Sequence record: NC_042018.1
Reading direction: 5' to 3' (one strand)
DNA: 64,000 nt
The position numbers and the translations under genes are program-made. Shown in pieces: positions 59,655 to 62,500 of the stretch (position 1 is the first letter of the stretch; every line of letters begins with the position of its first letter). The notes under the pieces are model-generated. The model was not told where the DNA came from and did not search any database. It saw only the letters and a list, made by a program, of their open reading frames with translations.

Positions 59655-59833
59655 CGCTAGAGCTCGACGTACTCGTCTTTATCTGGGTGTACGGGTGCTT
59701 GGGTGCAGCATTGATTAAGAAAGTCAAATACGACCCGGGAACACCGTACTGGAAAATCTTTCTGATGTACGTGTCGTTACCGTTAACCTGCGTAGTGTGG
59801 GTTGGGGTACGATTGGTGCGTTGGATATTTTAA
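59651..59833 (+). CDS. Small membrane protein (two TM segments)
   Basis: GTGA overlap with the previous gene. Hydrophobic segments LVFIWVYGCLGAALI and IFLMYVSLPLTCVVWVGV. Confidence 0.55.
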   Translation: MTLELDVLVFIWVYGCLGAALIKKVKYDPGTPYWKIFLMYVSLPLTCVVWVGVRLVRWIF

Positions 59834-59842
59834 GAGGTAGCA

Positions 59843-60217
59843 GTGGAAAAGTATAAATACCTTTTGGGACAGACCTCGTCCCTGAATCAGGTGTTCGTGG
59901 TGTTGTCCTCAGCATCCACGTTCACGCACGCAGAACTGGCGTTTAAGTTGGGCATTACTGACATTGTGTCTCAGGGCGAGTTGCTCTCTACTGATCCAGC
60001 GTTTACGCTGCCGGCCAGTGAAGCAGCACACCAGGGCGCAGTTGACGCATTGCCGGACGATCGTTTCTTTACCGCGGATGTTCCTCATTTTAGTTTTGCT
60101 CACCACATCTATCTGAACGTGGCTGAAATCGACGAAGATGAGTTCCACTACCGTCTGAGAAACATGAGTTCGGCGACGCTTCCAGAATCTGGCTTTACCT
60201 TTGCTTCACCTCTGTAA
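59843..60217 (+). CDS. Hypothetical protein
   Basis: GTG start after gaggt; 124 aa. Confidence 0.55.
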   Translation: MEKYKYLLGQTSSLNQVFVVLSSASTFTHAELAFKLGITDIVSQGELLSTDPAFTLPASEAAHQGAVDALPDDRFFTADVPHFSFAHHIYLNVAEIDEDEFHYRLRNMSSATLPESGFTFASPL

Positions 60218-60220
60218 TCT

Positions 60221-60252
60221 ATTACCCTGCCTCCGTAAGGGGGTGGGGTAAT
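60221..60252 (+). terminator. Rho-independent terminator (GNRA loop)
   Basis: ATTACCCTGCCTCC-GTAA-GGGGGTGGGGTAAT. Confidence 0.7.
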
Positions 60253-60303
60253 GTAAAGTTTTACCTCCTTCTTTATATCTATGCGAAAAACAAGGAATAC
60301 ATC

Positions 60304-60570
60304 ATGAATAACGAAACCACCGCTGTAGACGTTCCTGCTCCATTAACCAAAGGTCAGCTGTTGGCTCGCCTTGACCGCTACGGACCGGAATACTCGTTCC
60401 ACAAAGACCTGGTCGCAATCGCCGATTTGGCTGACACGCTGTATACCCGCATGGCCATTAGCCGTAGTCGTCAGCACAACATTCAGATTCGTGCGGCGCT
60501 CTCAAAATTAAGCGTGGCTGTCGATTGGACAGTTACCGTGTTGAAACAAGATATCGTGAGCTACGAATAA
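60304..60570 (+). CDS. Hypothetical protein
   Basis: 88-aa helical ORF with RBS aagga. Confidence 0.6.
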   Translation: MNNETTAVDVPAPLTKGQLLARLDRYGPEYSFHKDLVAIADLADTLYTRMAISRSRQHNIQIRAALSKLSVAVDWTVTVLKQDIVSYE

Positions 60571-60579
60571 GGACACGTC

Positions 60580-61041
60580 ATGGAAAACGTATACTTGCCT
60601 GGATTACGTAATGCCCTGATGCTGGCATTCATTGAAGAAGCCCGCAGTACCGGTAACCAGGTCTACCTGACGTTAAACGCCCGTCGTTTAACTGACCCTG
60701 CATTAGCACAGTACATCAAAGACGGCGTCCTGACCATGAACGTGGCCATTCGTGCTACGCCGGGTTATGACGTTGAACCTGAATTCCTGATTCTGCATTC
60801 TTCCTTTAATGGAAAGAAAGCCCAGGTCTTTGCGTATTACGATGACGTGATGATGATTGTGGCCTATGATGAAACCCGTCAACCACGCGCCATGTTCCAC
60901 ATCACTGACCATCATCAGGTTTCTATCCAGATGGAGAACATCAACGCCGCAGCCTTTACGGAAACCAATCCGTTAGAAGCTGTAAACGAAGAAACTCCAC
61001 CGCCAGCTAAAGAGCGTCCCAAACTCTCTGTAGTTAAATAA
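60580..61041 (+). CDS. sspB: SspB-like ClpXP adaptor (stringent starvation protein B homologue)
   Basis: QYIKDGVLTMNVAIRA and SSFNGKKAQV match the SspB core (EYARDGQIVLNIAPRA; ARFGGIPRQV). An acidic linker leads to the C-terminal RPKLSVVK, which matches the E. coli ClpX-binding tail RPALRVVK. Confidence 0.8.
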   Translation: MENVYLPGLRNALMLAFIEEARSTGNQVYLTLNARRLTDPALAQYIKDGVLTMNVAIRATPGYDVEPEFLILHSSFNGKKAQVFAYYDDVMMIVAYDETRQPRAMFHITDHHQVSIQMENINAAAFTETNPLEAVNEETPPPAKERPKLSVVK

Positions 61042-61050
61042 GGGTGCCGT

Positions 61051-61395
61051 ATGCGTAAATGGTTTTCGGTATTAGGGCGCTACACGGTTGCCCTATGCCA
61101 GCTTGGGTTAAAACGTATTCTTCTTGGTCACCATACGCGTCGCCTCATTAAGAAAGAGGACCGTATCATTCAAGAGTTCGAAAGGGCACTGACGGCACAA
61201 GGCAAAGCTTTGCGTAACCGGGGGTATTTGTCCCGGCAAAGCCTGAAGCACCTTACACTCCATCTGGCAGACGAATTGCACATGCAGAAGTGTCAGATTC
61301 GGAAAGTGACAGTAGAACTCATTGACGGTGATTTCTTTATTGATTTAGAAATCACTACCCATAACCGGACCGTGACCCGTTTGGTCGTTGTGTGA
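61051..61395 (+). CDS. Hypothetical basic protein
   Basis: 114-aa Arg/Lys-rich ORF in the operon. Confidence 0.55.
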   Translation: MRKWFSVLGRYTVALCQLGLKRILLGHHTRRLIKKEDRIIQEFERALTAQGKALRNRGYLSRQSLKHLTLHLADELHMQKCQIRKVTVELIDGDFFIDLEITTHNRTVTRLVVV

Positions 61396-61402
61396 GGACA
61401 AC

Positions 61403-61981
61403 ATGAAAGTATCCATGATTCTGGCTATGGACCGCAACTGTTTAATCGGGAAAGGCGACCAACTTCCCTGGCGTCACCCGGAAGACCTGTTGTGGTTCAA
61501 ACAGCAAACCATCGACAAACCGATTCTCATGGGACGTACGACCTATGAAGGATTAGGGCGTCCATTACCAAACCGCCCCAACATCGTGCTGAGTCGTGCT
61601 GACACTAACTTAGTGGGTGATGTAGCACGGGTGCAGTCGTATGAAGACGCACACTACCTGGCTAAGCAGTTGGGTTATGATGAGCTGATGATTATCGGCG
61701 GCAAGCAGGTGTATGAGTCACTGATTGACCATGCTGACTGTATCTACGTCACGGTCATCGATCACGACTACAACGGTGACGTCCATATGACCCATCCGTT
61801 GTTCGAAGCATTGGCTGGTCGGGACCTCTCTGAGAAGAACCCGGCCTTTACCAATCTCGGCTTTGATCGGTTGTTTACTCGCGACGGTGACGTGAGACAT
61901 GTGTGGGATGTCGAGGTGTTGAACCGTGTCCTTAGCAATGATGTTATGCTCAATTTTGTGAAGCTAACACGTTGCCATTAA
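61403..61981 (+). CDS. folA: Dihydrofolate reductase
   Basis: ATG at 61403 after gagga. ILAMDRNCLIGKGDQLPWRHPEDLLWFK, MGRTTYE, RPLPNRPNIVLS, IIGGKQVY. Confidence 0.95.
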   Translation: MKVSMILAMDRNCLIGKGDQLPWRHPEDLLWFKQQTIDKPILMGRTTYEGLGRPLPNRPNIVLSRADTNLVGDVARVQSYEDAHYLAKQLGYDELMIIGGKQVYESLIDHADCIYVTVIDHDYNGDVHMTHPLFEALAGRDLSEKNPAFTNLGFDRLFTRDGDVRHVWDVEVLNRVLSNDVMLNFVKLTRCH

Positions 61982-61990
61982 GGAAAGGAT

Positions 61991-62425
61991 ATGGGTCTGG
62001 GTTACATCGACGTTAAGCTCGATTCCAAGCAAGAAGATGACTTGATTCGGGACTTAACAACTTTAGGGATTAAAGCTCTACCAAAAGGGAAGTACCACTG
62101 TACTGTCATTTATGACAAACGTGAGGAACTTGATAAGCCGCTGTGCGACATCGACCCTGAGCAAGTCTTTGAAGCACACGTCGTGGAGGTTAAACCACTC
62201 GGAGATGCCCTGGTCTTTACTATGACGTCTAAAGATATCTATGATGAATTTAGACGATTGCAGGAAGCCGGATATCAGCACAGTTTCCCTGAGCTGTTGG
62301 TTCACATGTCAATTTGCTACGACTTCAGTGCGTACGACAAGTTGAAGGTGGAACAGTTCATGGGCCGATGGATAGGCCGCAACATTCAGTTCTCTCGCGA
62401 ATCGTTACAACCCGTTAAGTATTGA
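61991..62425 (+). CDS. acb1: 2H phosphodiesterase, Acb1 (T4 57B)-like anti-CBASS candidate
   Basis: 144 aa with two HxT/S motifs: H36-C-T-V-I-Y and G.QH.F....H105-M-S-I-C-Y-D. The C-terminal RESLQP matches the T4 57B pattern (HSTICY; GATHDF..Y.PHITLSYN; REYKEP). Confidence 0.72.
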   Translation: MGLGYIDVKLDSKQEDDLIRDLTTLGIKALPKGKYHCTVIYDKREELDKPLCDIDPEQVFEAHVVEVKPLGDALVFTMTSKDIYDEFRRLQEAGYQHSFPELLVHMSICYDFSAYDKLKVEQFMGRWIGRNIQFSRESLQPVKY

Positions 62426-62429
62426 TGCT

Positions 62430-62462
62430 CCCCTGCCCTCGTCCTACGGGACGGGGGTGGGG
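62430..62462 (+). terminator. Rho-independent terminator (UNCG loop)
   Basis: CCCCTGCCCTCGTCC-TACG-GGACGGGGGTGGGG. Confidence 0.7.
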
Positions 62463-62482
62463 TTAATCTATAAGAAATTTCA

Positions 62483-62500
62483 TCTCTAAATTATTATCGT
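62483..62500 (+). promoter_or_regulatory. Putative phage promoter motif (degenerate copy)
   Basis: TCTCTAAATTATTATCGT lies directly after a terminator and about 50 nt before the next ATG. Confidence 0.35.

Follow-up and report, generated by a model that had tools for sequence, protein, structure and literature searches.

Protein gp117 of Erwinia phage vB_EamM_RisingSun is a real but very diverged homolog of the bacterial adaptor SspB. It ends in a strongly constrained counterpart of the tail with which SspB docks on ClpX, and most of the residues that characterize the folded domain of bacterial SspB have been replaced. By analogy with the bacterial protein, we give an even chance to the reading that gp117 is a retargeting ClpXP adaptor of the SspB family with altered cargo specificity. 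The hijacking of ClpXP by the phage, as proposed earlier from the DNA sequence alone (the sequence-only reading), is plausible. If phage SspB-like proteins do redirect ClpXP, this would amount to natural targeted protein degradation by a virus against its bacterial host, and such proteins would form a class of factors for host takeover or counter-defence that act in the cytoplasm when nucleus-forming phages infect a cell.

The existence of gp117 and its SspB-like label are not new, contrary to what the sequence-only reading had assumed. The protein is a correctly annotated, diverged family member: it is a “hypothetical protein” in GenBank, but “stringent starvation protein Sspb-like” in RefSeq and SspB-like in PHROG 8945, and its ortholog in the sister phage Joad is named SspB in UniProt. 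SspB-fold proteins from the jumbo phages Noxifer, Rebecca, PhiEaH1, 201phi2-1, PhiPA3, PA7, Psa21, and Phabio are present in BFVD. The paper describing RisingSun itself makes no mention of gp117, and in the literature searched we found no phage SspB homolog with a demonstrated function. The present analysis adds that the docking tail is strongly constrained, that the cargo surface no longer carries the bacterial signature, and that the gene neighbourhood is conserved.

The DNA analyzed is a stretch of 64,000 nucleotides (the window), in which positions 59800–62500 are 100% identical to RisingSun (NC_042018.1, MF459646.1) and 96.8% identical to the same region of Joad. Window coordinates are converted to those of the record by adding 62000, and the gp117 reading frame corresponds to positions 122580–123041 of NC_042018.1 with a 100% match. 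RisingSun is a 235-kb jumbo phage for which the RefSeq annotation lists a nuclear shell protein (gp28) and the tubulin PhuZ (gp17), and it is therefore considered a nucleus-forming phage. The gp117 protein ends in ...ERPKLSVVK, directly followed by a TAA stop codon. It differs from its Joad ortholog by 18 synonymous and 2 nonsynonymous changes (pN/pS 0.03), indicating that the gene is under strong purifying selection. The features of the locus are listed in Table 1.

Table 1. Features of the gp117 locus, in window coordinates.
Feature	Position	Strand	Description
gp116	60304..60570	+	88-aa helical protein; constant upstream neighbour of gp117
Shine-Dalgarno-like AAGGA	60569..60573	+	6 nt before the gp117 ATG; overlaps the gp116 stop codon; read from the sequence
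gp117, SspB-like gene (YP_009612861.1)	60580..61041	+	ATG-started ORF, 153 aa plus stop
N-terminal helix, residues 6–24	60595..60651	+	AlphaFold helix, pLDDT >90
Beta-rich SspB core, residues 25–118	60652..60933	+	hhalign, Foldseek, AlphaFold strands
Flexible, mildly acidic, proline-containing linker, residues 119–145	60934..61014	+	pLDDT 52–66, composition
C-terminal tail RPKLSVVK, residues 146–153	61015..61038	+	ClpX-binding (XB)-type motif; alignment to E. coli SspB
gp120	61991..62425	+	Acb1-family match

Assignment of gp117 to the SspB family is supported by several lines of evidence. The Pfam SspB profile (PF04386) matches the protein with 27.0 bits, marginally at its gathering cutoff of 27 (E 5.2e-6), and the alignment covers residues 13–153 and profile positions 6–156 of 156, reaching the very end of the model. 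PHROG 8945 (“stringent starvation protein SspB-like”) aligns residues 1–153 to profile positions 3–149 of 149 (E 3.2e-64). As a single sequence, gp117 shows weak similarity to the solved SspB structures (H. influenzae 1ou9, E 0.017). A profile built from alignment A4, which comprises eight members of the phage clade only, matches nothing but SspB chains in the PDB (10 out of 10), with the E. coli chain 8et3_Y as the best match (E 4.8e-14). Comparison with nine bacterial-type SspBs in hhalign gave a probability of 99.2% (E 1.3e-19) over residues 14–101.

The AlphaFold model of gp117 has a mean pLDDT of 82, with values above 90 in the core. When this model was used in a Foldseek search of the PDB, the top 17 matches were all SspB (best match 1ox8_A, E 4e-5, target-normalized TM 0.72), noting that the AlphaFold input alignment contained bacterial SspBs and may pull the model toward their fold. 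The SspB-like core seen in the sequence-only reading is therefore borne out by the agreement of the Pfam match to the profile end, the phage-only profile, hhalign, and the structural search, and a profile search does recover the SspB fold. In addition, the model predicts a clade-specific extra hairpin at about residues 102–118. The NCBIfam equivalog models for “ClpXP protease specificity-enhancing factor” (NF008762–NF008770) all score far below their cutoffs (best 30.9 bits versus 135), and gp117 is not an equivalog of bacterial SspB.

Among 1.84 billion representative proteins, an exhaustive HMMER search returned only 15 matches at E <1e-3, and the proteins therefore form a small, isolated subfamily. 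A word-based protein search with gp117 alone gave only two matches, tblastn of 50,697 phage records at E 1e-5 retrieved only RisingSun (two records) and Joad, and a viral-contig profile scan with a two-sequence alignment had RisingSun itself as the sole match. At E 10, tblastn also gave weak matches to phages pEa_SNUABM_54 and FLC4-3B, both of which are to real SspB-like proteins.

Several candidates were discarded. A further tblastn match at E 10, in Kosakonia phage Kc263, spans two unrelated genes and was taken as chance. Classification of the pEa_SNUABM_54 protein as being of the type found in phage RAY was dropped, as tblastn shows this protein to stand alone among phage records. Protein P0006 (3,500 aa) contains 20 stretches that match the linker region, which we consider a low-complexity artefact. 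Mentions of SspB in two papers referred to a different SspB, involved in phosphorothioation, or to host SspB in a pull-down list.

The terminal RPKLSVVK, interpreted in the sequence-only reading as a retained ClpX-docking tail, is located at the extreme C-terminus. The phage-clade profile aligns it to the end of the E. coli SspB chain 8et3_Y, which reads RPALRVVK and is identical at R, P, L, V, V, and K. We compared the tail with those of full-length SspBs from 80 gammaproteobacterial genomes (Table 2), a set of gammaproteobacteria other than the Erwinia host, the nearest of which is Acerihabitans (Enterobacterales), with an SspB ending in RPSLRVVK. The C-terminal ClpX-binding pattern is present in 79 of the 80 bacterial proteins, and RPKLSVVK fits it. 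Agreement with the bacterial pattern extends to six of the eight positions; the exceptions are position -6, which is variable in bacteria, and position -4. As serine at -4 is absent from all 80 bacterial tails, the affinity of gp117 for ClpX may differ from that of the bacterial protein.

Table 2. Residues in the C-terminal tail of 80 gammaproteobacterial SspBs and of RisingSun gp117, numbered from the C-terminus.
Position	Bacterial SspBs (n = 80)	RisingSun
-8	R or K 68	R
-7	P 66	P
-6	variable, K 0	K
-5	L 80	L
-4	K or R 72, T 7, S 0	S
-3	V 71, I 7, L 2	V
-2	V 56, I 24	V
-1	K 79	K

Within the phage clade, the tail is by far the most conserved segment, with a mean pairwise identity of 0.75, compared to 0.38 for the N-terminal helix, 0.26 for the core, and 0.17 for the linker. 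Four of its residues (P147, L149, V152, and K153) are invariant. In one clade member (P0004), the motif is followed by six further residues, and it is absent from the looser relatives P0012, P0015, and P0016. In approximately 228 kb of RisingSun, a C-terminal L-x-[V/I]-[V/I]-K occurs in one of 2,349 stop-to-stop segments of at least 40 aa, and this one is gp117. A literature search for the letters of the tail together with SspB gave no match.

Most phage-borne SspB-like proteins end in P-K-L-S/T-[V/I]-V-K (P0001–P0011, L006:3959-4402, and L102), whereas K at -6 and S at -4 are both absent from the 80 bacterial SspBs. This variant is found in the RisingSun clade, in pEa_SNUABM_54 (RPKLTIVK), and in P0011, encoded on a phage-like contig; these sequences are not independent, and L102 (RPKLTVVK) was found using a pattern that required the variant. 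The letters RPKLSVVK also end a protein of approximately 193–213 aa that is not SspB (L106:4722-5303 and L107, on IMG/VR contigs of approximately 5.4 kb). Its assignment to the RepL family is based on a Pfam score of 26.5 bits (cutoff 20.3). Around five chance matches are expected in that scan by a rough estimate, and the occurrence may be a coincidence.

The segment that connects the tail to the folded domain, described in the sequence-only reading as an acidic flexible linker, answers to that description in a mild form. Residues 119–145 contain six Glu, one Lys, and four Pro and have pLDDT values of 52–66 in the AlphaFold model, and the linker is therefore considered flexible and mildly acidic. 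Across the phage clade it varies in length and sequence and contains indels.

In contrast to the tail, the folded domain has lost most of the bacterial signature. In SspB, only the dimer interface and the groove that binds the ssrA tag are highly conserved (PMC9963277); our interpretation of the cargo surface follows this general statement on conserved surfaces rather than residue-level ssrA contacts. Among the 80 bacterial SspBs, 42 alignment columns have a residue shared by at least 85% of the sequences. RisingSun keeps 11 of these, mostly in the buried core (for instance N54, A59, F76, and G78) and at L, V, and K of the tail, and the other 31 are replaced. In all eight clade members, the replaced positions include the strongly conserved bacterial residues of the N-terminal helix, without exception, and those of a conserved stretch near residues 94–104. 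Conservation at positions 20–28 is inflated, as a peptide pattern spanning them served to retrieve the 80 bacterial sequences; an independently gathered set (A5) has the same invariant residues.

The N-terminal helix had been singled out in the sequence-only reading as diverged, and this is indeed the case: when the profile is aligned locally to solved SspBs, the aligned part starts no earlier than gp117 residue 29–42 and excludes the helix. The altered substrate specificity that was proposed on this basis is consistent with the loss of most bacteria-conserved residues from the substrate-binding domain. With 11 of the 42 conserved positions kept, recognition of the ssrA tag by gp117 has probably been changed or lost. 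Within the phage clade, only the tail is more conserved than the helix, which suggests a re-coded rather than a lost surface. A complete loss of cargo binding would, however, also fit the loss of signature residues.

These observations bear on whether gp117 could act as a conventional SspB, that is, whether it still recognizes ssrA-tagged and/or RseA-like substrates and boosts the clearance of stalled-translation products by the host during infection. Family membership and the intact tail are in line with such a role, and the very divergent Caulobacter SspB orthologs are among the structural matches of gp117 (2qas and 2qaz), showing that low identity alone is compatible with ssrA binding. However, the replacement of 31 of 42 conserved positions, including all those in the N-terminal helix and the A-R-E-N-G stretch, and the wide margin by which all NCBIfam equivalog models miss their cutoffs argue against it, as does the absence of a tmRNA: no tRNA or tmRNA was found within the window. 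Given the lost signature residues, we consider a conventional adaptor improbable.

The retargeting adaptor that we prefer would work as follows. The protein would be synthesized outside the phage nucleus, in the cytoplasm of the host, and RPKLSVVK would dock on the N-terminal zinc-binding domain of host ClpX, as the tail of bacterial SspB does. The flexible linker of approximately 27 residues would leash the folded domain to the protease, and the re-coded domain would bind some cargo in place of the standard ssrA tag, or bind the tag in a different manner. Cargo thus tethered to ClpXP would then be degraded. We infer from the comparison with bacterial SspB that gp117 would dock on ClpX and dimerize, that a cargo of some identity would exist, and that its delivery would benefit the phage.

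The bacterial system provides the basis for this proposal. SspB binds to the N domain of ClpX through a short segment at its C-terminus, SspB lacking this tail has a very low affinity for ClpX, and the binding of SspB to ClpX is stabilized mainly by tethering to the N domain and by the ssrA tag bridging both proteins (PMC9963277). An XB peptide joined to a bait peptide is enough for the degradation of an untagged protein by ClpXP, as demonstrated with the synthetic degraders named CLIPPERs (EMBO Rep 2025, PMC12373786). These work by the same principle as proposed for gp117; being engineered peptides and not a natural protein, they bear on the mechanism of gp117 and not on its family.

No Clp, Lon, or HslU ATPase is named in the whole RefSeq annotation of RisingSun, and the ClpX partner would therefore be that of the host. 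The annotation does name a head maturation protease and GroEL. Approximately 60% of the RisingSun genes are labelled “hypothetical,” and a divergent phage-encoded partner is possible.

The main rival to a retargeting adaptor is a decoy, or competitive inhibitor, in which the tail docks on the ClpX N domains but delivers nothing, and thereby displaces host SspB and other N-domain clients. As a consequence, phage or host proteins otherwise removed by ClpXP would be stabilized, and SspB-dependent responses, such as the delivery of the anti-sigma factor RseA, would be dampened. In line with such a role, the tail is the most constrained part of gp117, and the bacterial signature residues of the ssrA groove and dimer interface are largely gone. 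Competitive inhibition was proposed by the authors of the pf16 study for their phage SspB (PMC5587285), and docking of substrate-free SspB has been discussed as a potential competitor for access to ClpX (PMC9963277). For a decoy, however, the tail alone or the tail on any dimeric scaffold would suffice, yet the SspB fold has been kept. Moreover, the whole gene is under strong purifying selection, and the conservation of the N-terminal helix above that of the core suggests a working surface. We regard a decoy as a serious contender that is nonetheless unlikely.

The gene neighbourhood of gp117 is conserved. Five of the other clade members (P0002, P0003, P0005, P0007, and P0009) were traced to contigs, and their SspB-like proteins are 25–69% identical to that of RisingSun. 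All five, including one on a 234,968-bp metagenome contig, share a block with the order DNA ligase, RNase H, small ORFs, an ORF of 86–91 aa, the SspB-like gene, usually an ORF of 114–137 aa, DHFR, and an Acb1-family gene. A 232,793-bp contig, found via its gp116 homolog, has the same block with an SspB-like ORF of 150 aa. Sharing of the block at 25–69% identity indicates that the gene is old and has been vertically inherited in the phage lineage. Its location in a phage gene block differs from that of bacterial sspB, which adjoins sspA.

In all relatives examined, the gene for gp116 immediately precedes the SspB-like gene, and in L002, L091, and L092 it overlaps the start of the latter. Of the two proteins, gp116 is by far the better conserved: in the same phages, its identity to the RisingSun protein is 84, 56, 60, 39, and 61%, versus 69, 39, 28, 30, and 25% for the SspB-like protein. 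The gp116 model consists of three helices (pLDDT 74). We found no Pfam match and no structural match for gp116 (best E 0.73), and its PHROG family is labelled as being of unknown function. It is a possible partner or cargo of gp117, an association that we infer.

The constant proximity of gp116, sometimes overlapping the start of the gp117-type gene, could also point to a role for gp117 that is unrelated to ClpX, for instance binding of a phage protein such as gp116. Against this, the residues that do not vary in the bacterial ClpX-binding pattern are shared by the tail of gp117, and like tails are found on unrelated phage SspB-like proteins (RPKLTIVK in pEa_SNUABM_54, FLSVVK in FLC4-3B, and RPKLTVVK in L102). 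A drifting remnant is excluded by the purifying selection and the deep synteny. Together, we consider a ClpX-unrelated role or a remnant highly improbable.

A more specific form of the retargeting adaptor can be envisaged, in which gp117 is a natural ClpXP retargeting module. Its re-coded SspB body, possibly together with gp116, would seize a host defence or regulatory protein in the cytoplasm and tether it to ClpXP for degradation, and the phage-typical P-K-L-S/T tail (P-x-L-K/R in bacteria) would be tuned to compete with host SspB for the ClpX N domains. We offer this version as a speculation and think it rather doubtful.

Two genes downstream of gp117 lies gp120, and the block may therefore be a host-takeover or counter-defence neighbourhood. 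The gp120 protein is labelled “RNA ligase” in RefSeq and “putative structural protein” in the GenBank record of Joad. It matches the Pfam family Acb1 (PF23474), an anti-CBASS cyclic-nucleotide phosphodiesterase, with 50.5 bits (cutoff 27, E 2.4e-13), and the same family call is obtained for the gp120 orthologs in every related contig. On the 34.8-kb ENA contig of a distant relative, a gene of 337 aa (L091:14609-15622) has a precomputed Pfam match to the AcrVA2-like family (PF26125), and is located a few kilobases downstream of the SspB-like gene.

Compared with E. coli SspB (PDB 1ox8, 1ox9, 1yfn, and 8et3), gp117 has the same fold and the same three-part layout of a folded domain, a disordered linker, and a tail at the extreme C-terminus, at about 20% identity. 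The linker of gp117 is approximately half as long and less acidic, and the protein further differs in the predicted C-terminal hairpin and in the replaced bacterial positions.

Phage-encoded SspB homologs have been reported before, and the idea of a phage ClpXP adaptor was already in print. [quoted passage not shown] A GFP fusion of gp039 stays cytoplasmic, outside the phage nucleus, and the authors suggested that the SspB homolog could help to overcome host defences (Cell Rep 2023, PMC10299810). RAY belongs to a different phage lineage from RisingSun, and gp039 was not retrieved by searches from gp117, so that the two proteins are at best very distantly related. The SspB homolog gp18 of Pseudomonas phage pf16 was discussed as a modulator of host SspB function (PLoS One 2017, PMC5587285). 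This protein closely resembles the SspB of its host (“high levels of homology”), has a deletion in its acidic region, and seems to have been captured recently, unlike the RisingSun clade, which is old, has been inherited vertically, and stands at a large distance from all bacterial SspBs.

In Ralstonia jumbo phage FLC4-3B, gp94 (L007:2971-3378) is labelled “hypothetical” but is a typical bacterial-type SspB (Pfam 115 bits) that ends in FLSVVK; here, a jumbo phage appears to have acquired sspB independently and more recently. RisingSun also encodes a GroEL-type chaperonin, gp190, outside the window (L096:36839-38518, positions 165839–167518 of the RisingSun record), making gp190 and gp117 two RisingSun proteins that would touch host protein quality control. 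Finally, a near-complete RisingSun-like genome (L097, the 232,793-bp Logan contig assembled from run SRR19636044, and L098) has a gp116 that is 83% and an SspB-like protein that is approximately 67% identical to those of RisingSun. Its gp116 homolog is named at NCBI as a Salmonella enterica protein, and relatives of RisingSun therefore seem to occur in cultures or samples of Salmonella.
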